This document shows, one piece after another, positions 5,391-64,000 of a stretch of 64,000 nt of DNA. Origin of the DNA: Macrostomum lignano (lineage: Eukaryota); contig NIVC01000874.1 of the NCBI GenBank assembly GCA_002269645.1, positions 248,001 through 312,000 on the forward strand, read 5' to 3'. A model generated the notes under the pieces. It had not been told where the DNA came from, did not search any database, and was given only the letters and a program-made list of their open reading frames with translations. The translations under genes and the position numbers were made by a program. The number at the start of each line of letters is the position of its first letter. Position 1 is the first letter of the stretch.

Positions 5391-5404
5391 CTGAGGGACG
5401 ATTG

Positions 5405-21517: not shown

Positions 21518-21549
<32 letters not shown>

Positions 21550-21744
21550 GATGTAGTATTTTTGAAAGCGCGTGATATTTCAAAGCGTGAAAAACGAACA
21601 TAAACAATACTTCGAAAGAATTTTACTTTTAACGAATAACGACGATTTAAATATAGGAAATTAAAAAAGACAGTAAATGAATAAACAACTGAAAAGCGGA
21701 TTTGTTACACTGCTGATGTATCTGATTCAGTTTGTTTAACTGTT

Positions 21745-37036: not shown

Positions 37037-38216
37037 CGCTCGTATCCGCGCGCTTGCTTGCCTGCCGAGGGGATTCGGCGGAATGGGCAGCAATGGGTCT
37101 CGTCAGCTGCATGCCCAGGTCCAGGTAGTTCTCCATCAGCTGTCTGGCCAGCGTCAGGTGCTCGCAGACGGTCTCACCTCGGGCCGGTCCGTACTCGAGC
37201 TTCTGTTCGGCCAGGTGGCTCAGTCGGTAGGCGGTGAAGGCCTGGAAGCAGCCGGCCACCTTCACGGGCGGCAGGCCGGGCGGCTGAGCCGTCGTGTTGA
37301 AATCGGAGACGATCGTCGATTCGCGGCTGACCTGGGAGAACAGCCTGGTGCGCTGGAACACCAGGGTGCAGTTGTCGTAGATGACGTCACGAGACCTGGT
37401 GTGGGCGCACAGGGACTGCAGCTCCGGCCTGTCCCGGAAGTAGTACAGGCCCTGCAAGATGGCGTCCAGGTCCCACGGCTTGAAGCTGAGATCGGGATCC
37501 ACAACGATGAGCAGGGAGTCGCGGTCGGGTCTGTAGAGCTGCCGGTAGATGTGGCGCAGGTAGATGTTCCTCAGGGCGGACATCACGATGCCGCGCTCGC
37601 GGTTCTCGACTTGGTTGCGCGGCAGCGACCAGCCCTGGCGGTGGGCGCGGCCGGAGGAGTAGCTGATGTTCATGCGGCACGCGGCGTCGGCGCCCCCGCA
37701 ACCCAGCAGGCGCACACGGGGGTCTCGCCGGCGCCAGTCGGTCAGGAAGCGCCTCGTATCGTCCGCGCTGTCGTTCTCCACGAAGACGAAGGCGGCGCTG
37801 CGGAAGCTGTCGGCGAGGCGCCGCATCTGCTGGGCGGTGCCGGGCAGTCCGCGCATGGCGTTGCGCACCGAGGCGGCAAACACTACGTCGACAGACGAGC
37901 GCAGCCAGGCCGCGGCGGCCCGGGTTCGAATCTTCGGGTCCAGCTCGGCTGGTGAGTCGAGTCGCAGCAGTGGCAGCTTCAGGCTGGAGTTGAACTCGTG
38001 AAGGCAGCGGCCCGACTGCTGACGCTGCAGCACTCGGGCGAAGGAGGCGTTGAAGTCGTCATCCGTGTTGAAGACCGGGAAGGTGATTTGGTAGCTGCTG
38101 AGCTTCGGGGCGTAGGAGCTCAGGCAGAGGAAGACGACAAGCAGGACAAACAGCAGCAGCAATGGCAGCAGGCAGGTGCTTTTTGCCTGTATGTGCCGGA
38201 TTTACTTTAGTCTGCA
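36987..38216 (-). CDS. Type II membrane GT-A-fold glycosyltransferase, CAP59/GT69-like
   Basis: N-terminal TM; motifs VVFAASVRN, FVENDSADDT, SALRN, LLIVVDPDL (DxD), VAGCFQAFTAY, CEH. No intron evident in the catalytic region. No in-frame ATG: needs an upstream exon (acceptor catacag) or loss of one A in an A5 run to join ATG at ~38216. Confidence 0.75.
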
Positions 38217-40832: not shown

Positions 40833-43754
40833 TTTCGGCTCAGCACAGAATCAAAGCACAAAACACAACAATGGCGTCGCAGTCACTTGGCGAACTGCCG
40901 CTGGAGAAGCCCGATCGAGCTCAAACCTGGATGACTGCCTTCCAAGCGCTGGCCCGAGCAAGGGACTGGACTGATAGTGATGGAAAGAAGACCATCGCAG
41001 ACAACTTTTTGGCGCACTGCGGGCTCACAGCCTTGGAGAAGATACAAAGCATAATCGCCCCCAAATCCGTGACCGACCTGACTTTTGATGAAATCAACAC
41101 TGCCGTGCAAGCGTACCTAAAGCCAAAGGAAAAGCTGGTCATCGCTGGACGCGTTCGTTTCTTCGCCATGCGGCAAGCACCAAATGAATCAGTTTCTGAC
41201 TTCGTTAGCCGACTTCGTCGTGCCGCTAAGGACTGTAAGTTTGATGATTTGAAGACATCCACCAGTCCTCTCGAGGAATTGCTCCAAATGGCGCTAATTT
41301 CTGGGCTCAGCAATGTAAACCAACAACAACGCGTTCTGGAAGCCACTCAGATCAAATCATTCAAGTCGGTTCCCGAAATTGTCGACTTTATTCGCGACCT
41401 AGAGCAGGTGACAGCTTTTGTGTCCATAAAATCAAGCGACTTTCAAGCGACTTTGACTCAGCCAGCTCCTTCAGTCCAAACACACGAAGCCTCTGTGCAT
41501 TACTCGCAGCGACATAATGGACATCGGAGTGTCAAGGACTGTCGTTACTGCGGCAAAGCACATTCGGAAGGAAAATGCCGGCTTTTGGCAAGCTCTGTTC
41601 AAAATGTGGTAAGAAAAATCACTTAACCAGTGTATGTCGCTCATCATCTGCACGGCCTGTGCACCAAGTCACTGACCCATCAGCTCATGAAATAGACAAT
41701 GAGCCACGTGAGAAGACTTCTCTGATGCATCTCAGCGACGTAGGCACCGTCCACGCTGTCAACGTGGCCACCGAGCCACTTATTATCGATGGCAAGACCG
41801 TCGACATGCAGATCGATACAGGCGCCTCCGTCTCCGTGCTCTCCAGTTCGCAATGGGAACGACTGGGTCGACCCTCGCTGCAGAAGTGTTTTCGGCGGCT
41901 AGAAGCCTTTGATGGTCACGTGATGAAATCACTCGGGAAGCTGGCATCGCCTTTTCCGCGGTGGCATCCCTCTGAACACATCGGCGAGAATCGGGCTCTG
42001 GGCTATGCATCTCATGCAATTTGACTTCAACATCGAGTACGTGCGAGGCCGCGACATTCCACACGCTGACGCTTTATCTCGGCTCCGCTGACGCTTTATC
42101 ACCCTTCAGCAGATGACAAGGAAACGTTTGATGCTATCAACGTCGTGGTATTTGAATCGCCGGTGATCGAGGCCGGAAGAATTTTGGCAGAAATGGACGC
42201 AGACCCGTTCACCCAGAAGATTTTAATGAGAGTACGCGATGGAAATTGGCAAGGGTGCTCGCAGGCAGAGTCAAGCTTCAAAGCCGTTTCCGAAAAGCTA
42301 ACGCTGGAAAACGGACTTCTTTACATGCAGAGGAGGGTTTACATCCCCCCACGGTTGCGCCGGGCTGCCTTTGACGCGATCCATGACACCCACTCTGGAA
42401 TTCAGGCCTCATACAACCTGCTTTCAGCGTCTTGCTGGTGGCCTGGGATGCAACAGGATGTGTCACGATTTGTCCAACGCTGCCCGGTCTGCAGCCGCCT
42501 ACGACCGCGTGTCGGCCACGACAGGGATCGATGGCCCGCCCCGGACTATCCATTCCAACGCATTCACATGGACTGGGCGCATGTAAGAGGAGCTGGCGAC
42601 ATACTGATTATCGTTGACGCTCATTCTGGCTGGATAGAAGCGTTTCCCTGCCAAAACAGAGTGGCCAGCACTGTCCAGCGGTGCCTCTGCGCCATCTTTG
42701 CACGCTTTGGTATGCCGGAGCTGGTTGTGTCAGACAACGCACCCGAATTTGTGGCCGATAGCCTTAACGCATGGCTGCGCGCACTTGGAGTGAAGAAAAT
42801 GGAGTCACCCGCCTATTATGCTCAGGCAAACGGCCTCGCAGAAAGGGCAGTGCAGACCGTTAAATCTGAGCTGCGTGCATGGTCGGAGAGAATAACTCAC
42901 ATGGATTTCCCATTCTACCTGCAAAAAGTGCTCATGCACCATCGCAACTCCTCAAGAAGCCGCGGCCAGTGCCCAGCCGAGTTGGTGCTTGGTAGACGCC
43001 TTCGTGTACCGGTCGTCTCACAGTTCGAGCAAGGAGACAACGTCATCTACCAGCCGCAGAAATCAACTCAGGGAAGCCAGGCTACATTTCTAATGACTGC
43101 TGGACACAATACGGCATGGATTTTAGAAGATGAGAGCCTGAAGCTGGCCAGCACCAATCAGTTGGCCCCACCAATGCCACAGCAGGACGCCCTTACAGCG
43201 GACGAAGAGGAAGCGAATGACAATCTGCCTGTGCAACAGCCCCCGATGCAAATGGCGGCCGGAGAAGAGCAGGCACCAACGACCCATGAGCAGGATGCCC
43301 CAGAGCAACCGAATGACAACCCGATGCGCCGAAGCTCGCGAAATCGTCGGGCCCCTGATCGATTTGTGCCGTTATTGCTGAACAGTATAGACGCTGATTA
43401 AATTCCAAACTTTCAACGAATTCGCCGTTACTTTGTTAAGCACCAAGCTCCCTAAGCTCACCCGTTCATACTCAAACCCACTAATCAATAACCACCAACG
43501 CTTTTCCGTTGCAGTTCTCATTCCCTCGAAGGGGGACATGTTGTATACCGATCCGAATCCAATGTACTTTTATTTTCAGTCGTTGCCCCAGCGTTAATTT
43601 ATTTGTCTGTGTCCCAAACAGCTACCGACTGACTCTGACTCTATAAAGGCTTGCCGTTACTTATATCGTTTAGCAAAATATACATTCAACTTAAGCTACG
43701 CTCTTGTTGTAACAGCTTTCGGCTCAGCACAGAATCAAAGCACAAAACACAACA
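40833..43754 (+). mobile_element. Ty3/Gypsy LTR retrotransposon, internally deleted (no RT), 5' LTR reduced to 38 bp
   Basis: gag from ATG 40871 with two Cys motifs (CRYCGKAH..C, CSKCGKKNH...C); protease DTGAS; RNase H tail IEYVRGRDIPHADALSR; integrase (H..H...C..C, HMD, SDN, NGLAERAVQT); PPT GAAGGGGGAC; 3' LTR TGT...ACA at 43539-43754. Confidence 0.92.
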
Positions 43755-44702
43755 ATATTCTTACACATACACATGTAATTAAGAGAAATGAAACACACAA
43801 TACATATGCAATACAGCTCACAAAATTGTATAAATCCAAGGACTACTTAGGTAGTTTATATAAATTACTTCAGTTGTCCTAGTATAAATATTTTACTGTA
43901 TCAACGCTACACACTATTTACTTGTTATATCGTGCTATAATTTTCGAACTATGGCACCTGGGTTTTCCTGCATGATATTTCTTCTTAAAAAACATCAAAA
44001 CCATTACCGGCCTGTGTGGCGTTGGATGTGCACATGAATAATTATTGCCCATTGGGTTACCTGCTCATTTATTGAGACAAGAGCAACATCTATTGCATGG
44101 TACTACTGTCTACTGGTTCCTACGCTCGTATCACATATCTGATATTATACTGATTAGATTACATAAGTATTATTGTTGACGATTGCTATATGGCTGAAAT
44201 CAATAGTACGTACACTGCCAACAGATTTAACTGCTCTGGTAGTGCTGAGAAAAGTATGAGCTAAAATAAGGTAGGAAACTTCTAAGAGACATTCCTCTAC
44301 GATCAGTTTTATACCTGAGACAATTGGAAATATTCCTGACACAGTTGCTGAAAGTTTGGCTTTCAAATTTTCTTAACTGTGCCAAGTCTGCCAAATAAAT
44401 TAGTTTGACACAGTTTTGCATAGTTGTGGTACAATTGGCAGAATTGAAGATTTTGCTAGGACAATGACTTTCCCGTTGGCTCATGAGCAAGCAGACAGAG
44501 TCAGGTGAAAATCAGTAGTCTCTGGGGTCACAGTTATGAGGGAGCTAGCAGGGGTCAAGCGAACACGTAGTTACTGAAGGCCACAGTTATGAGGGAGCAG
44601 ACGGGGTCAAGTGAACATTAAGTAGTCAACATCGATTAACAAGAACGTAACAGTAACACATGAGCATCAAATTTAAAATTACAGGCTTTACTCTGAAGTT
44701 TT

Positions 44703-45176
44703 TCAATGAGAACCCAAGCTGAACAGCTGCAGACTCCGTGAGCGCTTCTGAGCTTTGCTCGGATCAAAGGAGACCTGCCGAGCGAGCTGTGACACGGTCT
44801 GAGCAACGCAATAGTACTTTATAATTTCGCCTCTCTCATTTCTGAACTCGTACGGCTTCTCCGCCATGTGCCGCCTCACGAGAATCATGATGTCCTCCAG
44901 GTGCTTCTCCATGTAAAATGGCTCGATGTAGTCGCACAGGGTCTGCACGAAGACGCTGCCAGTCTGAGGGTCGCGGTAGGACACCTGACCCTCTGTGGTA
45001 GGGAAGCAGAACAGGAAGTCACTCTCTGGCGGGTACAGGGCCGGGTTCTGCGCGAACTCTGGGGGCAGCTGGTCGACTGCCAGTCCCCTGTGCGTCACTT
45101 CGTCTGTGCCACTGCCGCGGCAGGCCTGGACAAAGAAGATCTTCGGCTTGCCCGCCAGGTCGGGTCAGACGGAGGC
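44703..45176 (-). pseudogene. ANK-caspase copy A, exon 3 (QACRG + p10) with premature TGA at 45167-45165
   Basis: Acceptor cctcctccag; GCC TCC GTC TGA where copy B has TGC; downstream KPKIFFVQACRG...SDFLFCF..SYRD..GSVFVQTLC is intact. Confidence 0.85.
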
Positions 45177-45261
45177 CTGGAGGAGGGTTGGGAAATGTGT
45201 AGAAATTTGTAGAGCTGCAATGCTTTGCATCATATGCACAGATGAGCCAGACCAGACCCAC

Positions 45262-45619
45262 CTTGAACTTGGCTGCGAGCTCCAGAACCGGACTCTGCAC
45301 TCCATGGCCATCGATAATGCAGTCCCTTCTCTGTGCGTCCTTGCGGCCGTGGGCCATCAGGAAGCAGACAAAACTGCCGTGCTTGGCGAGCTCCTTGGAC
45401 TTCTTTGTCTCATTGAGGAAGTCATCGATCTCTGCAGTTGTGGGATTTTGCACCTCCTTGATGGTGAAACTCAGCTTCCTGAAAAGCTTCCTCACTCGGT
45501 CCACATCCCGCTCCGAGCCTTTGCGCTCCTCTTCGCCGCTGCCAGTTGAGTACGTGTTGATGTTGATGATGAGGCAGAATCCCTGCGGGTTCGTCACCTG
45601 GTAGAAATCCTCATGGAGT
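45262..45619 (-). CDS. ANK-caspase copy A, exon 2 (caspase p20 N-part, catalytic His in FLMAHG)
   Basis: PQGFCLIININ...RKGSERDV...FVCFLMAHG; acceptor gcattccag (phase 2), donor AAG|GTGGGT (phase 0); 85-bp intron follows. Confidence 0.9.
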
Positions 45620-46014
45620 CTGGAATGCAGCAGGGTGATCGGGGTGTGAAGCAATGAGTGCAGAACAAGAATCTCCGGAGACCTTTGCCTGATTCTGTGG
45701 GAAGTTTTGCCCGAGAATGCTATGGGATGCCGTGGAATGCTGTGGGCACACTGTATTATATATAATCTCTTCCTTACTAAACCTAAACTGATCATTGTTA
45801 TATCTCTGAAGAAAATAAAAATTAAGAACCAATCGAAGCAAATCATATTCTATGAGCGTTGCATGCAGCCCACAAAAAAGCTTTGACTTCATTTAAAAAT
45901 CTTTTTTTTCTTCAAAATTTAATGCTATTAATTAGCTCGTAAATCCAGCATTCAATTTTTAATGTCACTGTAAGAGACGTGCCAATATATCCGCTTTTTT
46001 CATACAAAACTTAC

Positions 46015-47339
46015 GGTACTGTCGGCGTCTTCTCAGACTGGGACCTCTGCTGGTCCCGCCGCTCAGCGATCCACCGCGTCAACTGAGACCCGTGCTGAGA
46101 GTTCAGCTTCGCGTAGTCAGCAACAGACTTTCGCTTCCATGGAAGAAAGTGCGAAGCATCCCTTAGATCAAGGACAGAGACACCCAGTAAGTCAACGATG
46201 AAGCTGAGCGTTTCGACATCTTGATATTGAGCAGCCACATGAGCCGCTGTAATCCCGTTAAAACCTCTTTTCAAAAGGCATGACCGGCCGAGTTGCTGAA
46301 CCAGCCACTTGAGACAGGAGTTAGTAGCTTCATTCCTAGCGGCCCAGTGAATGGCAGTGCGTTGGAGTCGGCCAGGCTGATGAAAGCAGTCGGATCCGAG
46401 GACTGATTTGAAGAACTGCATGGAATCGGCGCCCTGCTTCCAAGCAGCGAGATGGACGGGAGTGTTTCCTTGTTGGTCTCGAACGGAGAGACAGTCGGTT
46501 CCGCACTCGTTCACCAGCCACTTGAGACAGGAGTTAGTAGCTTCATTCGTAGCGGCATGGTGAATGGCAGTGCGTTGGCAATTGCCAGGCTGATGGAAGC
46601 AGTCGGATCCGAGGACTGATTTGAAGAACTGCATGGAATCGGCGCCCTGCTTCCAAGCAGCGAGATGGACGGGAGTGTTTCCTCGTTGGTCTCGAACGGA
46701 GAGACAGTCGGTTCCGCACTCGTTCACCAGCCACTTGAGACAGGAGTTAGTAGCTTCATTCGTAGCGGCATGGTGAATGGCAGTGCGTTGGCAATTGCCA
46801 GGCTGATGGAAGCAGTCGGATCCGAGGACTGATTTGAAGAACTGCATGGAATCGGCGCCCTGACACAAAGCAGCGAGATGGACGGGAGTGTCTCCTTCTT
46901 GGTCTCGAACGGAGAGACAGTCGGTTCCGCACTCGTTCACCAGCCACTTGAGACAGGAGTTAGTTTTTTCATTCGTAGCGGCACAGTGAATGGCAGTGCG
47001 TTTTATGTAGCCAGGCTGCTGGAAGCAGTCGCATCCGAGGTTTCGGTGAATGAGCTCCATCCATGACTCATCTAGATACAAGGCAGCCAGGTGCACTGGA
47101 GTGTTCATCTTCTCGTTGGTGCAGGTGAGGCATTTGGTTCCGAGTTTCTGAATGAGAGCCTCCATGCAGCTTAGACCGTCGGGAAGGCAGGCCACGTGGT
47201 GAGCAATGGACTGCTCCAACTGGTTGACGCTGACGGTATGGTTGGTGTCGAGCTGCCAGCAGAGATCGAGGAGGCTGTCTAGGTCCTTGGCAGCGAGTGC
47301 TGCAGCTACCAATGCGCGTATTGAGGCTTGCGGCTCCAT
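46015..47339 (-). CDS. ANK-caspase copy A, exon 1 (ankyrin array: N-cap, three 71-aa double-ANK units, C-cap)
   Basis: TPVHLAA / TAIHxAA ankyrin motifs; ends GTA CC|GTAAGT (phase 2), matching the phase-2 acceptor of the caspase exon. Confidence 0.9.
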
Positions 47340-49029: not shown

Positions 49030-50200
49030 AGCTAGTTTTGTCAACATGTTTTAGCGGCCGCCTCAATACCAGCTGGACAGGACTTTGAGCGTTGGCTGGC
49101 CAGATTCAACAATTTTGCATCTTCCTGTGGATCTGCGCAAGAATGTGCTGCTGTCATTCCTCGACGATAAATCATATCAAGCGGCCAGCATTTTAGATGC
49201 TTCCCGAGTCCCAGGACGGCTTTGAGAAGGCTCTGAAAAATCGATTTCGGCCATCGACATCATCTGCAGGCGCAGTTCTTCAATCTCACTCAAAAGGACG
49301 GTCAGTCGGTTGCAGACTATTCCGATGCTTTGATTGTTGCGGCAAAGCGCGCTTTCCCGAGTTGGTGGAGACGAAAGCAGGAGACGTCAGTGACAGCGAA
49401 GGATGAGCTGCTCAAAGGTCGGTTTCTATCCGGATTGAGGGACCCAGCTGTGCGAATGCAGATGCAGATGCAGCCAAAGGCGAAATTCGCTGATGCGGTG
49501 GAAACAGCGCGATTCGTGGAATCTATACAGTCGCAAGGAGCCGCAGCTACGGATCTAGCTGCTGAGGTTCCCGAAGCCTTTGCATTCGAAATTCAACGGT
49601 CTCTGCAGGAGCTGTCCAACAAGCTCAATCGCTGGGAGACAAAGGACCAGGATCATCGAGAGAGTGGCGACAGACGCAGAGTTGTGACATGCTGGAAGTG
49701 CGGTAGGCCGGGCCATGTTCAAAGATTTTGCACTCAGAAATCAGGAAACTTCGGTGGAGCGGCGACCGCCGGGGTGCCGTTCCTCAAGTGAAAATCTCAG
49801 TGCACCCAGTGGTGGAGGTGTCCTGCTCAGCCACTGGTGCTAACGTGCTGGTGAACTGTAGCATCCTGCCAATGTGTTTCCCTTCGGAGTCCCGTAGTCG
49901 GTGCACACCGACCAGGCTCGGAACTGGGAGTCGCAGCTGTTTCAAGAGACGATGCGGCTGCTGAAAATCGACAAGACTCGGACGACAGGCTACCACCCTG
50001 AAGGAGACGGCGGTTGCGAATGGATGAACCGGACGCTGGTGCAGCTGTTGCGAGCATGAGTAAACGAGAATCAGCGAGACTCGGATCTTTATCTGCAGAT
50101 TGCACTGATGGGCTACCGCACTTCAGTCCACAAGTCTATTGGTCAGACACCTTCGGCGATGCATTTCGGCGAGAACTGCGGGGCGCACATGCAACACAAC
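49030..50200 (+). mobile_element. Decayed Gypsy remnant (gag with CCHC knuckle; integrase fragment)
   Basis: RFLSGL...CWKCGRPGHVQRFC; then KTRTTGYHPEGDG..ERMNRTL...YRTSVH..IGQTP; pol largely deleted. A ~54-bp segment is shared by 47794-47842 and 50262-50310. Confidence 0.75.
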
Positions 50201-51739: not shown

Positions 51740-52150
51740 CACAGACAGTCATCACACATTTGTCACAGAGTCTCGCACAGTATCACACAGTATCACAGAG
51801 TCATACACAGTCTTACACAGTATCTCACAGTATCACACAGTCTCACAAAGTATCACAAAGTCTCACACAGTATCACACAGTATCACACAGTATCACACAG
51901 TCTCACACAGTCTCACACAGTATCACAAAGTATCACACAGTATCACACAGTATCACACAGTCTCACACAGTATCACACAGTATCACACAGTCTCACAAAG
52001 TATCACAAAGTCTCACACAGTATCACACAGTATCACACAGTATCACACAGTCTCACACAGTCTCACACAGTATCACACAGTATCACACAGTATCACACAG
52101 TCTCACACAGTCTCACACAGTATCACAAAGTATCACACAGTATCACGCAG
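51740..52150. repeat. 10-bp minisatellite AGT(A/C)TCAC(A/C)C
   Basis: Direct reading. Confidence 0.93.
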
Positions 52151-52849: not shown

Positions 52850-53525
52850 CCTGACTCTCATTCCCGATCTCTCTAACTCTCAATGCCAATCCTCTCTGAC
52901 TCTCATTCCCGATCTCTCTAACTCTCAATGCCAATCCTCTCTGACTCTCATTCCCGATCTCTCTAACTCTCAATGCCAATCCTCTCTAACTCTCAATGCC
53001 AATCCTCTCTGACTCTCAATGCCAATCCTCTCTAACTCTCAATGCCAATCCTCTCTGACTCTCATTCCCGATCTCTCTAACTCTCAATGCCAATCCTCTC
53101 TAACTCTCAATGCCAATCCTCTCTGACTCTCAATGCCAATCCTCTCTGACTCTCAATGCCAATCCTCTCTGACTCTCAATGCCAATCCCTCTGACTCTCA
53201 TTCCCGATCTCTCTGACTCTCAATGCCAATCCCTCTGACTCTCATTCCCGATCTCTCTGACTCTCAATGCCAATCCCTCTGACTCTCATTCCCGATCTCT
53301 CTGACTCTCAATGCCAATCCCTCTGACTCTCATTCCCGATCTCTCTGACTCTCAATGCCAATCCCTCTGACTCTCATTCCCGATCTCTCTGACTCTCAAT
53401 GCCAATCCCTCTGACTCTCATTCCCGATCTCTCTGACTCTCAATGCCAATCCCTCTGACTCTCATTCCCGATCCCTCTGACTCTAAATGTTAATCCCTCT
53501 GACTCTCAATGCCAATCCCTCTGAC
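52850..53525. repeat. Minisatellite of alternating 21/22-bp units (ctctgactctcattcccgatct / ctctgactctcaatgccaatc)
   Basis: Direct reading. Confidence 0.92.
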
Positions 53526-53619
53526 TTTCATTGCTAATTCTAAAGCAATGAGGGCAAGGAGCATTGCTAATTCTTCTTTTCTCCACTGCAGAAAAAACCC
53601 TGTCAAATGTCAAGTTAGA

Positions 53620-54013
53620 AGACAGAAAGAGAGAGGAGAGAAGGAGAGAGACAGGGAGAGAGAGGAGAGAAGGAGCGAGACAGAAAGAGAGGGGAGAGAA
53701 GGAGAGATACAGGGAGAGAGAGGAGAGAAGGAGAGGGACAGAGAGAGAGGAGAGAAGGAGCGAGACAGAAAGAGAGAGGAGAGAAGGAGAGAGACAGAGA
53801 GAGAGAGGAGAGAAGGAGAGAGACAGAAAGAGAGAGGAGAGAAGAAGAGAGACAGAGAGAGAGAGGAGAGAAGGAGCGAGACAGAAAGAGAGAGGAGAGA
53901 AGGAGAGAGACAGAGAGAGAGAGGAGAGAAGGAGCGAGACAGAAAGAGAGAGGAGAGAAGGAGAGAGACAGACAGAGAGAGGAGAGAAGGAGAGAGACAG
54001 AGAGAGAGGAGAG

Positions 54014-54053
<40 letters not shown>

Positions 54054-54112
54054 GGAGAGAGACAGAGAGAGAGAGGAGAGAAGGAGAGAGACAGAGAGAG
54101 AGAAAAAGAGAC
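53620..54112. repeat. Purine-rich (GA) compound repeat
   Basis: Direct reading. Confidence 0.92.
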
Positions 54113-54606
54113 AAAAGCGTCTCGCACGGCTTCCATGCTTGAGTTGAGCTGCAATCGAGTCGCATAGGCAGCCACTGCGACTCAGCCCTGGCCTGTTTAG
54201 ATGCCTTTTTATCATTGTTGCCTCTGCTGCAGCCAGCGAGAGAAGATACTCAGCCTTTCACCCCGCACCGAATCTCTGAGCACAGCCGCACCCTGTGCTC
54301 TCAAGCCGCAATTGTCTCTCTGCGCCTCCCTCCCTAGACTCGAACCCGTTTTCATTTCGGCGGTCTCTGAGTGAAGCTGGCAGCATCCATGTTTCTAAGA
54401 AAACAGCTCTCAGTTTTGTTGGTAGCGACGGCAAAGTCTGCTCTAATTTGTGTATTTGGAGTTGGTCTTGCGCTGAGAATGAGACTTGCAATTGGAATTG
54501 AAAATGTAACTTAGGCACAGTGAGCAGATGAAAACTTGAATAGATGCGGTAGCAACACTACATAATATGTACCATCAGCTGAAAAACTAAAGGTAGATGA
54601 AAAAAA

Positions 54607-55760
54607 TCAAGTAGTCTCTGGGTTCACAGTTATGAGAGAGTAGGCAGAGTCAAGTAAGCATCAAGTAGTCACTGAGGTCACAGTTATAAGAGAGCAGGCA
54701 GAGTCAAGTAAGCATCAAGTAGTCTCTGGGGTCACAGTTATGAGAGAGCAGGCAGAGCCAAGTAAGCATCAAGTAGTCTCTGGGGTCACAGTTATAAGAG
54801 AGCAGGCAGAGTCAAGTAAGCATCAAGTAGTCACTGGGGTCACAGTTATAAGAGAGCAGGCAGAGTCAAGTAAGCATCAAGTAGTCTCTGGGTCACAGTT
54901 ATAAGAGAGCAGGCAGAGTCAAGTAAGCATCAAGTAGTCACTGGGGTCACAGTTATGAGAGAGCAGGCAGAGTCAAGTAAGCATCAAGTAGTCACTGGGG
55001 GTCACAGTTATGAGAGAGTAGGCAGAGTCAAGTAAGCATCAAGTAGTCACTGGGGGTCACAGTTATGAGAGAGTAGGCAGAGTCAAGTAAGCATCAAGTA
55101 GTCACTGGGGTCACAGTTATGAGAGAGTAGGCAGAGTCAAGTAAGCATCAAGTAGTCTCTGGGGTCACAGTTATAAGAGAGCAGGCAGAGTCAAGTAAGC
55201 ATCAAGTAGTCACTGGGGGTCACAGTTATGAGAGAGTAGGCAGAGTCAAGTAAGCATCAAGTAGTCACTGGGGTCACAGTTATGAGAGAGTAGGCAGAGT
55301 CAAGTAAGCATCAAGTAGTCACTGGGGGTCACAGTTATGAGAGAGTAGGCAGAGTCAAGTAAGCATCAAGTAGTCACTGGGGTCACAGTTATGAGAGAGT
55401 AGGCAGAGTCAAGTAAGCATCAAGTAGTCACTGGGGTCACAGTTATGAGAGAGTAGGCAGAGTCAAGTAAGCATCAAGTAGTCACTGGGGTCACAGTTAT
55501 GAGAGAGTAGGCAGAGTCAAGTAAGCATCAAGTAGTCACTGGGGGTCACAGTTATGAGAGAGCAGGCAGAGTCAAGTAAGCATCAAGTAGTCACTGGGGG
55601 TCACAGTTATGAGAGAGTAGGCAGAGTCAAGTAAGCATCAAGTAGTCACTGGGGTCACAGTTATGAGAGAGTAGGCAGAGTCAAGTAAGCATCAAGTAGT
55701 CACTGGGGGTCACAGTTATGAGAGAGTAGGCAGAGTCAAGTAAGCATCAAGTAGTCAACA
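54607..55760. repeat. 54/55-bp minisatellite downstream of ANK-caspase copy B, ~21 copies
   Basis: Unit caagtagtcactggggtcacagttatgagagagtaggcagagtcaagtaagcat. Confidence 0.96.
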
Positions 55761-55841
55761 TCAAACGACAAGAACTTAACAAGTGGCTAATAAGCATCAA
55801 ATATAACATGACAGACTTCACTCTGATTCTGCAACATGTTT

Positions 55842-56315
55842 TCAACGAGAACCCAAGCTGAACAGCTGCAGACTCCGTGAGCGCTTCTGAGCTTTGCTCG
55901 GATCAAAGGAGACCTGCCGAGCGAGCTGTGACACGGTCTGAGCAACGCAATAGTACTTTATAAGTTCGCCTCTCTCGTTTCTGAACTCGCACGGCTTCTC
56001 CGCCATGTGCCGCTTCACGAGAATCATGATGTCCTCCAGGTGCTTCTCTGTGTAAAATTGCTCGATGTAGTCGCACAGGGTCTGCACGAAGACGCTGCCA
56101 GTCTGAGGGTCGCGGTAGGACACCTGACCCTCTGTGGTAGGGAAGCAGAACAGGAAGTCACTCTCTGGCGGGTACAGGGCCGGGTTCTGCGCGAACTCTG
56201 GGGGCAGCTGGTCGACTGCCAGTCCCCTGTGCGTCACTTCGTCTGTGCCACTGCCGCGGCAGGCCTGGACAAAGAAGATCTTCGGCTTGCCCGCCAGGTC
56301 GGGGCAGACGGAGGC
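55842..56315 (-). CDS. ANK-caspase copy B, exon 3 (intact QACRG + p10)
   Basis: ASVCPDLAGKPKIFFVQACRGSGTDEVTH...SYRDPQTGSVFVQTLC...GSR*; 474 bp, open. Confidence 0.93.
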   Translation of the reverse strand, partial: ASVCPDLAGKPKIFFVQACRGSGTDEVTHRGLAVDQLPPEFAQNPALYPPESDFLFCFPTTEGQVSYRDPQTGSVFVQTLCDYIEQFYTEKHLEDIMILVKRHMAEKPCEFRNERGELIKYYCVAQTVSQLARQVSFDPSKAQKRSRSLQLFSLGSR

Positions 56316-56400
56316 CTGGAGGAGGGTTGGGAAATGTGTAGAAATTTGTAGAGCTGCAATGCTTTGCATCATATGCACAGATGAGCCAGACCAGACCCAC

Positions 56401-56758
56401 CTTGAACTTGGCTGCGAGCTCCAGAACCGGACTCTGCACTCCATGGCCATCGATAATGCAGTCCCTTCCCTGTGGGTCCTTGCGGCCGTGGGCCATCAGG
56501 AAGCAGACAAAACTGCCGTGCTTGGCGAGCTCCTTGGACTTCTTTGTCCCATTGAGGAAGTCATCGATCTCTGCAGTTGTGGGATTTTGCACCTCCTTGA
56601 TGGTGAAACTCAGCTTCCTGAAAAGCTTCCTCACTCGGTCCACATCCCGCTCCGAGCCTTTGCGCTCCTCTTCGCCGCTGCCAGTTGAGTACGTGTTGAT
56701 GTTGATGATGAGGCAGAATCCCTGCGGGTTCGTCACCTGGTAGAAATCCTCATGGAGT
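56401..56758 (-). CDS. ANK-caspase copy B, exon 2 (p20 N-part, AHG)
   Basis: 358 bp with the same splice sites and phases as copy A; three substitutions seen relative to A. Confidence 0.92.
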
Positions 56759-57150
56759 CTGGAATGCAGCAGGGTGATCGGGGTGTGAAGCAATGAGTGC
56801 AGAACAAGAATCTCCGGAGACCTTTGCCTGATTCTGTGGGAAGTTTTGCCCGAGAATGCTATGGGATGCCGTGGAATGCTGTGGGCACACTGTATTATAT
56901 ATAATCTCTTCCTTACTAAACCTAAACTGATCATTGTTATATCTCTGAAGAAAAAAGACCTAAAAACCAATCGAAGCAAATCATATTCTATGAGCGTTGC
57001 ATGCAGCCCACAAAAAAGATTTGACTTCGTTCAAAAAAGTTTTTTTTTCAAAATGTAATGCTATTAATTAGCTCGTAAATCCAGCATTCAATTTTTAATG
57101 TCACTATAAGAGACGTGCCAATATATCCGCTTTTTTCATACAAAACTTAC

Positions 57151-59568
57151 GGTACTGTCGGCGTCTTCTCAGACTGGGACCTCTGCTGGTGCCGCCGCTC
57201 AGCGATCCACCGCGTCAACTGAGACCCGTGCCGAGAGTTCAGCTTCGCGTAGTCAGCAACAGACTTTCGCTTCCATGGAAGAAAGTGCGAGGCATCCCGT
57301 AGGTCAAGGACAGAGACACCCAGTAAGTCAACGATGAAGCTGAGCGTTTCGACATCTTGATATTGAGCAGCCAGATGAGCCGCTGTAATCCCGTTAAAAC
57401 CTCGTTTCAAAAGACATGACCGGCCGAGTTGCTGAACCAGCCACTTGAGACAGGAGTTAGTAGCTTCATTCCTAGCGGCCCAGTGAATGGCAGTGCGTTG
57501 GAGTCGGCCAGGCTGATGGAAGCAGTCGGATCCGAGGACTGATTTGAAGAACTGCATGGAATCGGCGCCCTGCTTCCAAGCAGCGAGATGGACGGGAGTG
57601 TCTCCTTGTTGGTCTCGAACGGAGAGACAGTCGGTTCCGCACTCGTTCACCAGCCACTTGAGACAGGAGTTAGTCTCATTCATAGCGGCCAAGTGAATGG
57701 CAGTTTCTTGTAAGTAGCCAGGCTGATGGAAGCAGTCGGATCCGAGGACTGATTTGAAGAACTGCATGGAATCGGCGCCCTGCTTCCAAGCAGCGAGATG
57801 GACGGGAGTGTTTCCTTGTTGGTCTCGAACGGAGAGACAGTCGGTTCCGCACTCGTTCACCAGCCACTTGAGACAGGAGTTAGTAGCTTCATTCTCAGCG
57901 GCACAGTGAATGGCAGTGCGTTGGAATCGGCCAGGCTGATGGAAGCAGTCGGATCCGAGGACTGATTTGAAGAACTGCATGGAATCGGCGCCCTGCTTCC
58001 AAGCAGCGAGATGGACGGGAGTGTTTCCTCGTTGGTCTCGAACGGAGAGACAGTCGGTTCCGCACTCGTTCACCAGCCACTTGAGACAGGAGTTAGTAGC
58101 TTCATTCACAGCGGCCCAGTGAATGGCAGTGCGTTGTACGCAGCCTGGCTGATGAAAGCAGTCGGATCCGAGGACTGATTTGAAGAACTGCATGGAATCG
58201 GCGCCCTGCTTCCAAGCAGCGAGATGGACGGGAGTGTTTCCTTGTTGGTCTCGAACGGAGAGACAGTCGGTTCCGCACTCGTTCACCAGCCACTTGAGAC
58301 AGGAGTTAGTCTCATTCATAGCGGCCAAGTGAATGGCAGTTTCTTGTAAGTAGCCAGGCTGATGGAAGCAGTCGGATCCGAGCACTGATTTGAAGAACTG
58401 CATGGAATCGGCGCCCTGCTTCCAAGCAGCGAGATGGACTGGAGTCTTTCCTCGTTGGTCTCGAACGAGAGACAGTCGGTTCCGCACTCGTTCACCAGCC
58501 ACTTGAGACAGGAGTTAGTCTCATTCATAGCGGCCTGGTGAATGGCAGTGCGTTGGAATCGGCCAGGCTGATGAAAGCAGTCGGATCCGAGGACTGATTT
58601 GAAGAACTGCATGGAATCGGCGCCCTGACAGAAAGCAGCGAGATGGACGGGAGTGTCTCCTTCTTGGTCTCGAACGGAGAGACAGTCGGTTCCGCACTCG
58701 TTCACCAGCCACTTGAGACAGGAGTTAGTAGCTTCATTCTCAGCGGCACAGTGAATGGCAGTGCGTTGGAATCGGCCAGGCTGATGGAAGCAGTCGGATC
58801 CGAGGACTGATTTGAAGAACTGCATGGAATCGGCGCCCTGAAACAAAGCAGCGAGATGGACGGGAGTGTTTCCTTGTTGGTCTCGAACGGAGAGACAGTC
58901 GGTTCCGCACTCGTTCACCAGCCACTTGAGACAGGAGTTAGTAGCTTCCCTAGCGGCCAGTGAATGGCAGTGCGTTGTACGCAGCCTGGCTGATGAAGCA
59001 GTCGGATCCGAGGACTGATTTGAAGAACTGCATGGAATCGGCGCCCTGACAGAAAGCAGCGAGATGGACGGGAGTGTTTCCTTGTTGTCTCGAACGGAGA
59101 GACAGTCGGTTCCGCACTCGTTCACCAGACTTGAGACAGAGTTAGTAGCTTCATTCTCAGCGGCACAGTGAATGGCAGTGCGTTGGAATCGGCCAGGCTG
59201 ATGGAAGCAGTCGGATCCGAGGACTGATTTGAAGAACTGCATGGAATCGGCGCCCTGCTTCCAAGCAGCGAGATGGACGGAGTGTCTCCTTGTTGGTCTC
59301 GAACGGAGAGACAGTCGGTTCCGCACTCGTTCACCAGCCACTTGAGACAGGAGTTAGTCTATTCATAGCGGCCAAGTGAATGGCAGTTTCTTGTAAGTAG
59401 CCAGGCTGATGGAAGCAGTCGGATCCGAGGACTGATTTGAGAACTGCATGGAATCGGCGCCCTGCTTCCAAGCAGCGAGATGGACGGGAGTTTTCCTTGT
59501 TGGTCTCGAACGGAGAGACAGTCGGTTCCGCACTCGTTCACCAGCCACTTGAGACAGGAGTTAGTAGC
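57151..59568 (-). CDS. ANK-caspase copy B, exon 1 (at least 10 double-ANK units + C-cap; 5' end lost in the gap)
   Basis: About 213-bp tandem units; donor CC|GTAAGT at 57150. Scattered 1-bp deletions above ~58430 are probably low-quality sequence near the gap. Confidence 0.85.
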
Positions 59569-59722
59569 NNNNNNNNNNNNNNNNNNNNNNNNNNNNNNNN
59601 NNNNNNNNNNNNNNNNNNNNNNNNNNNNNNNNNNNNNNNNNNNNNNNNNNNNNNNNNNNNNNNNNNNNNNNNNNNNNNNNNNNNNNNNNNNNNNNNNNNN
59701 NNNNNNNNNNNNNNNNNNNNNN
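59569..59722. other. Assembly gap (154 N)
   Basis: Run of N; true size unknown. Confidence 0.99.
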
Positions 59723-59745
59723 AAAATGAGTTTCACTGTACGTAC

Positions 59746-60627
59746 CAGTTCTCCACTGACTGCCGCTTGTTCTGCGACTCTCTGTGGCTGTTCGTTCTGC
59801 TCCTGCTCCTGGGTCTCTCTCCTGCTCCTGGTCTTCTGCTGCCTGCCCTGGTCTTCTGCTCCTGCCCTGGTCTTCTGCTCCTGTCCTTTTCTTCTGCTCC
59901 TGCTCCTGAGTCTTCTGCTCCTGCCCTGGTCTTCTGCTCTGCTCCTGGTCTTCTGCTCCTGTCCTGGATCTCCTGCTCCTGGATCTTCTGCTCCTGGTCC
60001 TTCTCTTCCCATTAGGCGCCCTCCCAGCTCGGCGACAAACTTCAGCAGCCGAGATCCGTGCTGAACGTTCTGCTCCATGTAGTCGGCCACCGAATTCCCG
60101 TCAGCGTCGAGAAGGTCGAACGCGGAAACGCCCAGCGAGTCCACGACGAGGCGAAACGAGTCCAGGTCTTGGTTCTGAGCAGCCAGGTGAGCAGGCGTAG
60201 CTCCATCCGAGTCTCTGTCCAGCAGGCAGGCTGGGCCGAGCTTTTCGACAAGAAACCTCAACGAGCTGCTGCTGGCTTCGTTCATGGCGGCCCAGTGAGC
60301 GGCGGTGCGCTTGAGCTGGCCGGGCTGCTTGAAGCATCGGGTCCGAGGGTTCGGAATGAGCCTCCAGCCATGACTCATCCTGGTGCATGGCGGCCAGGTG
60401 CACCGGAGTGTTTTGGTATTCGTTAACGCAGGTGAGGCAGTCGGTCCGAACTTCTCAATGAGAGCTCCAGACAGCAGAGTCCGCCAGGCAGCTGAGCGAC
60501 GTGGTGAGCCACCGTCTGCTTGCGATTGCGCACGGTGAGCTGCAGCATCGAGTCCATGTTGCAGCAGAGGGGAGCAGCCGGTCCGGCTCCCTGACATGGA
60601 GAGCGATGGAGACCGACAGAGCTCCAT
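59746..60627 (-). CDS. Third, divergent ankyrin paralog (copy C): N-cap + core + C-cap without the expanded units, then an E/Q/D-rich linker; frameshifted
   Basis: Across frames: TVAHHVAQLPGGLCCL, NTPVHLAAMHQDESWL, CFKQPGQLKRTAAHWAAMNE, GATPAHLAAQNQD, SVADYMEQNVQHGSRL, each matching copy A caps; candidate donor CTG|GTACGT at 59745. Confidence 0.7.
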
Positions 60628-60994
60628 GAGCTCTGTTTTCTTCTTTTGCATGCCGGTAGAAGCAAGCATTTTGGAGCAGGTAAGGCGAGTAGCAGAGTAG
60701 AGCTGTGCTCAGTTGAGCGAGTGTACGAAGTATTTATACCGACAGTGCGCTCTCAACTCTCAAGTCGGCCTGCAGCCAGCTGTCTACTAGCAGTAGGCAG
60801 TCTGCATTTTTGGCTCCTGCCTAAATACTTGAAGTAAGAGACCCGAGGCTGCTGATTTAAGCAAAATATACAATACCTTCACAGCAGTGCTAGCAAAATT
60901 GTCTCCATGGCAACTGTCTCTATGATGTATTTCAATATCCATGGTGCACTGTGTTCATAGTGAACTGTCTCCAGTCTCCTGTACAGACCATATC

Positions 60995-61815
60995 TCCCAA
61001 TCCGCCCCACCACCGAATCTGCCCCACCACCGAATCCGCCCTCCACCCAATCTGCCCCTCCACCCAATCTGCCCCTCCACCCAATCTGCCCCTCCACCCA
61101 ATCCGCCCCACCACCCAATCTGCCCCTCCACCCAATCTGCCCCTCCACCCAATCTGCCCCTCCACCCAATCCGCCCCACCACCCAATCTGCCCCACCACC
61201 CAATCCGCCCTCCACCCAATCCGCCCCTCCACCCAATCCGCCCACCTACCAATCCGCCCCTCCACCCAATCCGCCCTCCACCCAATCCGCCCACCACCCA
61301 ATCTGCCCCTCCACCCAATCCGCCCCACCTACCAATCCGCCCTCCACCCAATCCGCCCCTCCACCCAATCTGCCCCACCACCCAATCTGCCCCACCACCC
61401 AATCTGCCCCTCCACCCAATCCGCCCTCCACCCAATCCGCCCCACCTACCAATCCGCCCACCACCCAATCCGCCCCTCCACCCAATCCGCCCCTCCACCC
61501 AATCCGCCCCTCCACCCAATCCGCCCCACCACCCAATCCGCCCCACCACCCAATCCGCCCCACCACCCAATCCGCCCTCCACCCAATCCGCCCCACCACC
61601 CAATCCGCCCCACCACCCAATCCGCCCACCACCCAATCCGCCCGTCCACCCAATTTGCCCCACCACCCAATCCGCCCCACCACCCAATCCGCCCCTCCAC
61701 CCAATCCGCTCCACCACTCAATCTGCCCCACCATCCACCAACAAATCCTCCTCTTCACCCAATCCGCCGCTCCACTCAATCCGCCCCTCCACCCAATCCG
61801 CCTCACCCAATCCGC
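60995..61815. repeat. ~18-bp C-rich minisatellite (CC(T/A)CCACCCAATC(C/T)GCCC)
   Basis: Direct reading; G-rich on the minus strand. Confidence 0.93.
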
Positions 61816-62184
61816 CCCTGCACAACTCAAATCCTATAGAATCAAAGCCATAGCATTTGTTGGGATAATTATCCCCATATACGAGTAAATCACCCGTATA
61901 TTCAGAAGCAGAGTTGCGGAAGGATTTGCAGAACTTCTCGGGAGTTTTGCTCATCAAAGACTCAATAAAATTCGACTAAGGTGTTCGCTCCCGGACTGGG
62001 AAGGGGTTGAAAAAATTGCAAATAATTTTATAAACAGCGAATGCAAAAGCAGCAACGGAAGGCAGACGCAATTTCTAAGAGTGAAATCAGATGCAACCGA
62101 ATAATGTGGCGGGACAGAAATGGATTTGGGATTTTGGGAAAATTCGGACAGGGGCAGGTAAACTTGACGCTGGATTTTTTCTGC

Positions 62185-62345
62185 GGTGTGGGAATCGGTG
62201 GGAATCGGGTGGGAATCGGTGTGGGAATCGGTGTGGGAATCTGTGTGTGGGAATCGGTGTGGGAATCGGTGTCGGAATCGGTGTGGGAATGGATGTGGGA
62301 ATCGGTGTGGGAATCGGTGTGGGAATCGGTGTGGGAATCGGTGTG
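62185..62345. repeat. 12-bp repeat (GGAATCGGTGTG)n
   Basis: Direct reading. Confidence 0.92.
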
Positions 62346-62393
62346 TAACAGGGTGGGACATGAAGTCGAGCAGCCGATAAAAAGTCAGTCTGG

Positions 62394-63712
62394 TCAGGTG
62401 CTGTAAAACGACCTCTCAGGCAGGTACATCAGGTTTTCGTGGTTGTCAAGGGTGTCAAAAGTCCGCCAGTCCGGCCGCTGCTCCACCACCAGCGCGCTGT
62501 CTCTGAGCTGCGCCATCCGCAGCCCGATGAGGCAGCCGTAGAACCTGGCGCTGGCTGCGCCGTCCGACTTGAAGGTGACGGTGGCGCGGCCCAACCTCCG
62601 CTCCGACTGCCAGGAGCTCTTCAGCGTGATGGTCTCTGTACCGACGTCCGAGCCGTTGTCCAGGCTGACGATGAGCAGCGGATATGACTCATAGTTCCGC
62701 CTCTTCAACCGGATCGTCAGCGAGTTGCGGTCTTGTCGAGAGCTCTTGAAGTCCTTGACGATGGACCGCGGACGCTTCACGAAGGTCGGGTAGCGCTGCA
62801 GCTCGACCGTCACCGAGTCCAGGCCGGAGTTCGGGTCCTGCTGCAGGAAGACTCGCAGCTCGAAATCGGTGGCCGCGCCGGAGTCGCTGCCGAGGCTGAA
62901 CTGCACCGCCGCCAGGTCGATGAACTGCGAGCCGTAGCGGCCGGCGTCCTTCTCGGACACCTTGTACTCCAGACTGATGACCAGCTCGTCGTGAGGGACG
63001 CCGGGATTGGAGGCGAGCAGCAGGCGGCCGAGCAGGCCAGACGATGCGGCCTCGAAGTCGGCGGCGCTGATGCAGGCGGCGGGCAGCAGGCGGCTCCGGC
63101 AGGGGCACTGCCGCCCGATGGACTGCCGCAGCGGCCCCGTGTCCAGAGGAGCTCCGTTGATGCGCACGGCGGACAGGCAGCCGGTCCAGTTGGCGAAGGT
63201 CACCACCGTGAGGCGCGGCAGGCGCACCGGTAGCAGCAACTCCCGGCCGTCCAGCGTCAGCTTCAGATGCTCGTAGGGCTTCTTGTCGAACCGCTGCGGC
63301 TCCAGGCTGAATCGGTGCCACTTCGAGTCCTGCAGGTCCATCGGGGCAAAGTTTGAGCTGCCACGCTCGCTGCCGCCGAGTTCCAAGTTGATGCGCACCT
63401 GCCGGCCGCTGGTGAGCAGCAGCTCCACGAATTTGGACCCGTCATCGGAGCTCAGGCGCATCAGCCTGGAGTCTCCGGCGCCGGGGTCGCCATGGCGCGC
63501 AGGTAGGCGGACACCGAGTCCACCGACCGGGACTCCCTGCGGCTTAGTAGCTCCGCTCCGTTGGCGAAGGCGCGGACCGCCCCGCTGCCCGCTTCGCCGT
63601 CGCAGCTGTCAGCCTCCGACCTGGCGACGGGCCCGCGCAGGGCAGCCTGCTTGAAGAACTCATTAATCGGCGCCTTCTGGTCCGCGGCCTGCGCGCCGAG
63701 CCTCTCCAGTAG
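62394..63712 (-). CDS. Exon encoding two laminin-G-like domains (extracellular protein; family not assigned)
   Basis: LQDSKWHRFSL...LKLTLDG...WTGCLSAVRING, short Cys linker, second repeat ending FYGCLIGLRM; acceptor cattttccccag at 63713; one frameshift at ~63500 in a GCGC run. Confidence 0.65.
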
Positions 63713-64000
63713 CTGGGGAAAATGAGGAGGTTTTGATAAGTTCGTCAGCTGAGCATCTCTGCTGAGGAATCTACCCAGCGGGACTGTTATTCCTGGGGGA
63801 GGGGGAGGGTAAAAAGGCACTGCGCAGTACTAAGGTTTCTGGGTTCGATTCCGCAGCAAGGCCACGCACTGGGAAGTTTCTGGGACTGTCGAGGTTGGCT
63901 CCTGTGAGGTGTAATCAGTGTGGAAACGGGACAGAGGAATGAGCATTCGCAAACCTGCAGCAAGTCCGTCTCGTTCTGCCTGCCGGAGAAGCGGCACTCC

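Follow-up and report, generated by a model that had tools for sequence, protein, structure and literature searches.

Near-identical ankyrin units with hypervariable residues at predicted binding positions in caspase-fused genes of the flatworm Macrostomum lignano

The DNA studied here is a stretch of 64,000 nucleotides of the genome of Macrostomum lignano, a free-living flatworm (assembly GCA_002269645.1, contig NIVC01000874.1, positions 248,001–312,000 of the forward strand). It is referred to below as the window, and open reading frames translated from it match BOX15_Mlig proteins with 100% identity. Its minus strand carries a tandem array of near-identical ankyrin (ANK) units that differ in amino acids at only nine codons, clustered at the predicted binding face of the ankyrin fold. 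We regard the array as probably the N-terminal recognition prodomain of a cytosolic ANK-caspase: a long solenoid encoded in one large exon that is also a coding minisatellite, with units that recombine and a groove under selection.

Tandem Repeats Finder delimited the main array at 57436–59568 (period 213 bp, 10.1 copies, 92% matches, 2% indels) and placed a further array, with 3.5 copies, at 46300–47040. The units of the two arrays are placed as follows.

57462–59565, minus strand: ten tandem 213-bp units, B1 (beside a scaffold gap) to B10 (last), from Tandem Repeats Finder and codon register
46326–46964, minus strand: sister array of three units, A1–A3

Each unit encodes 71 residues, divided between a 35-residue and a 36-residue ankyrin repeat, and its translation from the minus strand is TNSCLKWLVNECGTDCLSVRDQxGxTPVHLAAxxQGADSMQFFKSVLGSDCFHQPGxxQxTAIHxAAxNE(A). 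Pfam models identify the array as ankyrin repeats (Ank_2, E = 3e-32; Ank, E = 1e-26). When the 13 window units (10 main, 3 sister) were set in codon register, amino-acid variation was found only at codons 23, 25, 33, 34, 57, 58, 60, 65 and 68. Codon 71 is subject to an in-frame 3-bp indel and is absent in units with Met at codon 68, so that units carrying the YLQE..L..M cassette, together with B5, are 210 bp long. Variable bases number 23 of 27 inside these codons and 4 of 186 outside them, and the four framework variants (codons 27, 46, 52 and 55) are all silent. Adding eight units (H1–H8) from a second M. lignano locus gives a set of 21 units, in which the corresponding counts are 26/27 and 9/186. 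Units differ from one another at nine or fewer of their 71 residues across lengths of 213–710 residues, and so lie within the threshold for fungal-type repeats of high internal conservation, at least 85% identity over at least 100 residues.

These counts bear out the first-pass annotation of this DNA, which had described near-identical units, silent sites included, with variation in clusters. It had also noted that many of the amino-acid changes involve several bases, and the alternatives agree with this: TGGAAG, TTGTGT, TTCTGT and TTGTTT in one set, and AATTGC, CGACTC, TACTTA and TGCGTA in another. Its inventory of variants for 57151–59568 needs partial revision. Of the residues that it quoted, LC, NC, H and T are confined to the sister array (46326–46964) and absent from 57151–59568, and a Lys at codon 25, in unit B6, had been overlooked.

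The variable residues were located on the ankyrin fold by HMMER alignment of two units to DARPin (designed ankyrin repeat protein) chain 5leb, from which canonical ANK positions were assigned; the alignment is anchored by D21-x-x-G-x-TPVHLAA-x-x on D-x-x-G-x-TPLHLAA-x-x. Variation falls on canonical positions 3, 5, 13 and 14 of repeat one and on positions 2, 3, 5, 10 and 13 of repeat two. DARPin libraries, as designed by Binz and colleagues in 2003, are said to randomise positions 2, 3, 5, 13, 14 and 33, which correspond to twelve positions per unit that were fixed beforehand as an a-priori set. Eight of the nine variable residues lie on these twelve positions (Fisher p = 4e-7). The randomised surface positions of internal DARPin repeats form the paratope (PMC8683736).

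An AlphaFold2 model of the ANK exon of the sister gene (gene A below) has a predicted local distance difference test score of 95, a predicted template modelling score of 0.88 and paired helices in every repeat. In this model the variable residues are located in the turn before the inner helix, in the inner helix itself, and at or just past its C-terminal end, with none in the outer helices; the face was assigned from the alignment and the secondary structure of the model, not from solvent exposure. Foldseek matched the model to espin, ankyrin-B, NOMPC/TRPA1 and DARPins, with a probability of 1.0 for espin, ankyrin-B and DARPins. The first-pass annotation had proposed that its idea of a variable binding surface would fall if the variable sites were not enriched on the concave face, and the enrichment at DARPin positions speaks for the idea.

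Nonsynonymous (dN) and synonymous (dS) divergences were estimated from pairwise counts by the method of Nei and Gojobori (NG86). Among the 13 window units dN was 0.63 at the nine variable codons, while the framework had a dS of 0.023 and a dN of 0.002. Because the use of the nine observed codons would be circular, the a-priori DARPin positions were used for the 21 units; these gave a dN of 0.375, compared with a dS of 0.027 and a dN of 0.015 for the other 59 codons. The ratio of a-priori dN to framework dS is 14.7 (codon bootstrap 5.1–92, never 1 or below). A rate at the variable sites no higher than that of the framework had been the other result named in advance as fatal to the idea, and the opposite was found. 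Units of the second locus carry different residues (E, S, G, K, F and L) at the same positions.

Thirteen units from five genes on other scaffolds, in which the ANK module is joined to a kinase (ANK-kinase genes), served as an independent control. Here dN was 0.44 at the a-priori positions and framework dS was 0.13, a ratio of ~3.4. This framework dS equals that of the non-repeat parts of the same exon (0.11–0.125), so these genes show no sign of homogenisation, and the signal of selection is therefore independent of a deflated dS. Protein entropy across 21 units of ten ANK-kinase genes peaks at positions 22, 23, 25, 33, 57, 58 and 68. Judged from these comparisons, diversifying selection on this surface is a property of the family.

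In ankyrin repeats at large, variability is likewise greatest at these positions, which also have high entropy in old, diverged members of the family, as would be expected if a recently amplified array simply varied at unconstrained surface positions with no positive selection. Such neutral variation should, however, leave dN equal to the silent rate, whereas we found ~15 times that rate here and 3.4 times in the ANK-kinase genes with their undeflated dS; moreover, the framework is under purifying selection (dN/dS ~0.15–0.5). We consider the neutral account highly improbable, and relaxation was rejected because dN lies far above dS. The apparent 'synonymous' divergence inside the hypervariable codons (0.18–0.33) is largely path-averaging of multi-base changes and was not used to date cassettes. 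The only case of one residue with different codons is Leu at codon 58 (TTA and CTC), both of which are one step from the Phe codon TTC.

The array belongs to a gene, termed gene B, in which the ANK exon joins caspase exons in frame, with donor, acceptor and phase all fitting. The first-pass annotation had placed the units at 57151–59568. They do stand there, but 57151 is no protein end: it is the final exon base ahead of a GTAAGT splice donor, and the apparent stop after ...EKTPTVP lies in the intron. The parts of gene B downstream of the units are as follows.

57151–57461, minus strand: C-terminal part of the ANK exon, made up of a diverged last ANK unit and the tail (TNSCLKWLVQQLGRSCLL...SEKTPTV and two bases of a Pro codon), exon end in phase 2
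56759–57150, minus strand: intron 1, with GTAAGT donor at 57150–57145 and CATTCCAG acceptor ending at 56759
56401–56758, minus strand: caspase exon 2, which encodes p20 sequence including the catalytic His (motif FLMAHG)
55842–56315, minus strand: caspase exon 3, with the QACRG active site, small subunit and stop at 55842–55844

The splice junction, between TPTVP and LHEDFYQ, is the same as that in the public model P0002 (694 aa), which is cut off at frameshifts in array B. Two further public models combine ANK repeats with Peptidase_C14 across this junction, P0001 (gene A) and P0140 (1073 aa, second locus); the proteins of the family are public as 'hypothetical'. Peptidase_C14 was matched in genes A and B and, with E = 6.5e-42, in P0140. 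The caspase domain aligns to caspase-3/7 (E ~1e-31 to 1e-27), and both AHG and QACRG are kept in gene B and at the second locus; the gene B caspase is apparently active. Pfam scans of the 1073-aa protein and the window exons detected no NACHT or NB-ARC domain, only Ank families, Peptidase_C14 and chance-level matches, and no signal peptide or membrane segment was found in the protein.

Gene A is an 11.1-kb tandem duplicate, 44483–47040 matching 55609–58173. Its ANK exon encodes, in order, an N-terminal cap, one diverged unit, the three near-identical units at 46326–46964 and a terminal unit.

46015–47339, minus strand: complete ANK exon of gene A, 442 codons (P0001 / PAA75580.1)
45262–45619 and 44703–45176, minus strand: caspase exons of gene A

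The ANK exon of the second locus, gene H, is an intact frame of 797 codons with eight regular units. No counterpart of gene A was found within 10 kb downstream of this locus, where only a 3.3-kb minisatellite and LINE (long interspersed nuclear element) copies occur.

Directly upstream of gene B lies an ANK-kinase gene, which is represented in the window by its first ANK exon.

59740–60669, minus strand: 5' ANK exon of the ANK-kinase gene, homeolog of P0022, frameshifted by single-base deletions

The intact homeolog P0022 ends in a STE20/MAP3K-like kinase and has the same ANK module as the ANK-caspases, and the counterpart at the second locus is at 10001–12569 of L007 (NIVC01000759.1). Throughout the wider family the same 71-residue bi-repeat module recurs, with either a caspase or a STE20/MAP3K-like kinase as its fusion partner. 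In another ANK-kinase gene, P0015, the ANK exon (L005 1001–2353) is an open frame with one unit more than the annotated protein, and its gene model seems to have spliced out one repeat unit as an intron. M. lignano also has, outside the window, another kind of ANK-caspase (P0042 / P0141), whose ankyrin repeats are of the ordinary, diverged sort and whose active-site motif reads QAGRG, not QACRG; this caspase is likely to be catalytically dead.

A protein-database search returned no close homologues outside M. lignano, and in that collection the family is essentially confined to this species. Likewise, a caspase-domain search with 105 relatives contained no ANK-bearing caspase outside M. lignano, the Schistosoma matches being CARD caspases. 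The nearest relatives of the caspase domain outside Macrostomum are caspase-3/7-like with ~33% identity, and the closest overall include short-prodomain caspases of M. lignano itself.

The reading frame of array B is incomplete in the assembly, and this raises the question of an artefact. The relevant features are listed below.

59569–59722: scaffold gap, a run of 154 N
58312–59565, minus strand: gap-side part of the array, units B1–B6, with the frame broken

The array runs into the gap, hence its count of at least ten units. Judged by the second locus, the gap conceals the 5' end of gene B, the kinase exons of its upstream neighbour and ~4.6 kb of DNA between the two genes. Units B1–B3 and B6 lack 14 bases in ~11 small deletions, overlooked in the first-pass annotation, so that the open frame of array B in the assembly extends only over 57147–58502. 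On the other side of the gap, 59878–64000 differs from the second locus by 9 substitutions and 36 indels over 4.1 kb, and 28 of the 36 indels are deletions of 1–2 bases in the window, densest beside the gap. As both gap-facing contig ends carry errors of the same deletion type, we judge that the frameshifts of array B are probably consensus errors of thinly covered long reads at contig ends; true decay of copy B is a possible alternative. Substitution identity to the second locus is 99.8% on this side of the gap, and divergence on the other (55742–57462) is 2.75%; sequences of different homeologs or haplotypes may have been joined in this scaffold.

The missing bases, the N gap, the indels beside it and an in-frame TGA in gene A would all be accounted for if long reads had been mis-assembled here or if copy B were a decaying pseudogene. 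Against this, the same cassettes are shared by several units and across three arrays, the ANK frames of A and H are intact, and units B4, B5 and B7–B10 are clean; the errors are all deletions at contig ends, which indicates consensus error and not decay, and P0021, an A-like protein in an older assembly, retains the affected Cys. We therefore consider an artefact or dead gene quite improbable, and assembly artefact as the source of the pattern was rejected on the basis of the cassettes in three arrays and the two intact open reading frames.

To examine how the units evolve, the three ANK-caspase paralogs were compared. Their flanks differ by only ~3–5%, yet the arrays comprise 3, 8 and at least 10 units. 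Most cassettes are not the same from one array to another; those common to more than one array include NC-R-H-T (A1, A2 and H8), LF (B4 and H3) and RL-R-W-R (A3 and B10). Recent block duplications are evident in array H, where H4–H5 has been copied to H6–H7, and in a 423-bp period reported by Tandem Repeats Finder for the window. Many pairs of sites violate the four-gamete condition, some of them between multi-base cassettes (TGGAAG/TTCTGT with TGCGTA/CGATTC), which are found in all four combinations of the two unit halves; recurrent mutation does not explain violations of this kind, which indicates that units exchange parts. The paralogs diverge by 2.8–5.0% in intron 1, with a dS of 0.026–0.056 in non-repeat coding sequence and 0.008–0.039 in the caspase exons. 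Framework dS is 0.014–0.025 within arrays and 0.015–0.034 between arrays, compared with 0.055–0.098 for the terminal ANK and tail segment of the same exon and 0.055 for its N-terminal segment. These values are suggestive of a framework homogenised by conversion or concerted evolution. The first-pass annotation had attributed the uniform framework to conversion or unequal exchange; the unit counts and the four-gamete violations support unequal exchange, while conversion of the framework is suggested and unproven.

Much of this could also arise if the units were young duplicates of one very recent unit under recurrent positive selection only, with a framework identical through youth and not through conversion and with nine codons altered by many selected point mutations. 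Framework dS within arrays is indeed similar to the dS of the paralogous caspase exons and to the divergence of intron 1, and the ANK-kinase subfamily has the selection signal without homogenisation. Against this, cassettes such as NC-R-H-T, LF, YL and WK are common to paralogous arrays, which makes distinct cassettes older than the gene split, yet the frameworks that bear them have diverged no further than the genes have. The multi-base four-gamete violations in addition require exchange, and point mutation alone would hardly produce a 15- to 28-fold excess over the silent rate in which 4–5 bases out of 6 differ and intermediates are scarce. Youth and selection by themselves are in our view a rather unlikely explanation.

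The extreme localisation of the variation and its restriction to discrete cassettes would also fit a programmed process, in which a dedicated mutagenic or cassette-copying mechanism acts on the nine codons in the germline or the soma. All four bases vary, however, and show no preference for particular bases such as a diversity-generating retroelement or a deaminase would leave; both types of mutagenesis were rejected on this ground. Neither a donor cassette bank nor a template repeat was seen in the window, its reverse transcriptases are ordinary LINE or long terminal repeat (LTR) types, and identical cassettes are stably inherited across paralogs. We give such a mechanism hardly any credence.

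The explanation that we prefer, a recombining solenoid with a selected groove, would operate as follows. Unequal crossing-over and short conversions would duplicate, delete and re-assort cassettes while keeping the framework uniform, and selection would favour new combinations of residues on the concave groove. The groove would, as the domain architecture suggests, bind a ligand, and in a rigid solenoid the number of units and the order of cassettes would determine how long the binding surface is and what chemistry it presents. The bound ligand may then cluster the caspase domains, which would be activated by proximity as in initiator caspases, and in the sister genes the same sensor module would be coupled to a STE20/MAP3K-like kinase.

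Several observations weigh against this explanation. Position 10 of the second repeat varies and is not a DARPin position, though it should lie on the same inner-helix face, three to four residues before 13/14. The placement of the residues on the binding face is a prediction from alignment and secondary structure, and the proposed mode of action is derived from domain architecture. NG86 pairwise counts disregard recombination and the shared history of units, and the contrast in dS between framework and flanks rests on 4–7 silent differences. Some cassettes are repeated within one array (YL-E-L-M three times and RF-R-C-E three times), which looks like recent amplification and not like selection for maximal diversity. 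The dN/dS of the paralogous caspase exons is 0.5–1.9 (small counts), which also fits partial decay of the genes, and half of array B, as assembled, lacks an open frame. Finally, gene A has a TGA at 45165–45167 (ASV-stop-PDLAGKPKIFFVQACRG), 11 codons ahead of QACRG, at which P0001 ends; it stands where genes B and H have a conserved Cys codon, and could be a polymorphism, an error or the mark of a truncated decoy form.

What the groove might bind is a separate question. Speculatively, the ligands are non-self or otherwise fast-evolving molecules, and the genes form a germline-encoded sensor-effector family that lacks the nucleotide-binding oligomerisation domain (NOD). A more specific version holds that they are lineage-specific NOD-less cytosolic sensors, whose hypervariable groove recognises pathogen, symbiont or allogeneic ligands and directly triggers the fused caspase or kinase; we hold this version to be tentative and somewhat doubtful. 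The partner could instead be an endogenous fast-changing molecule (a reproductive protein, a transposon product or a member of the family), with the caspase regulating cell death in tissue turnover or the germ line. Reproduction-related genes of M. lignano evolve rapidly, the locus is embedded in transposon-rich DNA, and the protein has no sequence mark of an immune role and, as noted, neither a signal peptide nor a membrane segment. On the other side, a hypervariable solenoid joined to death or kinase effectors is the architecture of non-self sensors such as the fungal NLRs described next (PMC4986451), with nothing more direct. We rate this endogenous-partner account as possible without favouring it; a fast-evolving endogenous partner and a non-self ligand stand on an equal footing.

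Repeats of high internal conservation in fungal NOD-like receptors (NLRs) were reportedly described by Paoletti in 2007. According to Dyrka et al. (2014, PMC4986451), such ANK, TPR and WD repeats have >85% identity, vary in number and undergo shuffling and concerted evolution; positively selected sites of the ANK repeats are on the concave face, and repeats of this type are very rare in metazoans (0.8%). The M. lignano units resemble them in being near-identical, variable in number, shuffled and coupled to cell-death or enzymatic effectors. They differ in belonging to an animal, in having no NACHT or NB-ARC domain, in an N-terminal solenoid fused directly to a caspase or kinase, and in a unit that is a pair of non-equivalent ANK repeats. 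Membership of the NLR (STAND) class was rejected, since the Pfam scans contained no NOD domain.

ANK-prodomain caspases of platyhelminths were reportedly described by Lee et al. in 2014. A 2024 survey found such caspases to be specific to parasitic flatworms and listed M. lignano with a kinase-prodomain caspase only (PMC11463336). Genes A, B and H share with the platyhelminth ANK caspases an ankyrin prodomain located N-terminal to the caspase in one flatworm polypeptide, and differ from those in the survey by their near-identical repeats and hypervariability, neither of which is reported there. A gene model that fuses ANK-kinase and ANK-caspase across the gap could be behind the 'kinase-prodomain caspase' of the survey.

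The coding minisatellites of PRDM9 and KRAB zinc-finger genes show positive selection at a few ligand-contact codons and rapid turnover (PMC8925151). Silent-site homogeneity, selection at contact codons and turnover of unit number and order by unequal exchange are common to those arrays and the present ones; theirs, however, are 84-bp C2H2 fingers that bind DNA, and ours are 213-bp ANK pairs that are presumably protein-binding and are fused to a protease. With DARPins the arrays share a quasi-identical framework and variable positions that coincide, in eight of nine cases, with paratope positions. Unlike DARPins, they are natural proteins with repeats of 35/36 residues that include an extra short helix, and they use a few discrete cassettes in place of full randomisation. 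Position 33 and position 14 of the second repeat are fixed, as is position 2 of the first repeat, while position 10 of the second repeat is variable.

The repeats of TAL effectors are likewise near-identical, differ at two specificity residues and read DNA bases, and the variable lymphocyte receptors (VLRs) of lampreys are solenoid receptors with a diversified concave face that is assembled somatically from cassettes. The M. lignano arrays give no indication of DNA reading of the first kind or of somatic assembly of the second. The germline ANK exons of A and H are complete reading frames; somatically diversified receptors of the VLR or immunoglobulin type have an incomplete germline gene, donor cassettes and a diversifying enzyme. 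The comparison with immune receptors is an analogy, and the 'repertoire' so far is a handful of germline genes. Literature searches on the gene identifiers and on Macrostomum ankyrin repeats returned no description of the family or its hypervariability. What appears to be new is an animal, NOD-less family of ANK-caspases and ANK-kinases with hypervariable repeats like those of fungal NLRs, a pattern undescribed for animal caspases.

Flatworms are without several canonical death-receptor components, and their innate recognition machinery is poorly known. FADD and the DED caspases have been lost in this group (PMC11463336). A caspase and a kinase that share a recognition-like sensor module are concrete candidates for a pathway from recognition to death. 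As M. lignano is a laboratory model with RNA interference and transgenesis, this idea is testable. The regime of a uniform framework with hypervariable contact residues, familiar from fungal NLRs and vertebrate zinc-finger arrays, is extended by these genes to animal ankyrin solenoids, and the natural array uses nearly the same paratope positions that engineers chose for DARPins. If the proteins were indeed NOD-less sensors of non-self, they would represent a new class of animal receptor for innate immunity or allorecognition and a natural counterpart of a DARPin library. Arrays of this kind are mis-assembled and mis-annotated, as illustrated by the truncated model and the spliced-out unit, so that their number in animal genomes is probably underestimated.

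The rest of the window is typical repeat-rich animal DNA with dozens of minisatellites and elements of LINE, LTR and piggyBac type, together with host genes that have PDZ, RRM and laminin-G domains according to Pfam. An AT-rich island at 14000–28000 (GC 0.25–0.37, against 0.45–0.63 around it) carries a full-length non-LTR retrotransposon reading frame with endonuclease and reverse transcriptase (1112 aa, 21745–25083, minus strand) and a fragment of a piggyBac-like transposase (17920–18393). Remains of a reverse transcriptase with RNase H are located at 3018–5014 (minus strand) beside PDZ exons (5011–7224), and those of an LTR element with gag, aspartic protease and integrase at 40760–43401 (plus strand). 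A zinc-knuckle gag fragment (49330–49791, plus strand) lies between the two ANK-caspase genes. The GC-rich open reading frame at 36987–38162 (minus strand, 391 aa) matches no Pfam family and carries a hydrophobic anchor at its N-terminus; a long reading frame runs antisense to it. Non-coding minisatellites are very dense, with periods of 10–72 bp and up to 48 copies, at the following positions.

First part of the window: 524–879, 1621–2326, 5402–5901, 8596–9794, 12017–12698 and 13533–14438
Second part: 32930–34277, 35920–36404, 51745–52150, 52851–54104, 54606–55757 and 60996–61818

One of these minisatellites, at 53617–54104, has grown to ~3.3 kb at the second locus (L008 14266–17662).

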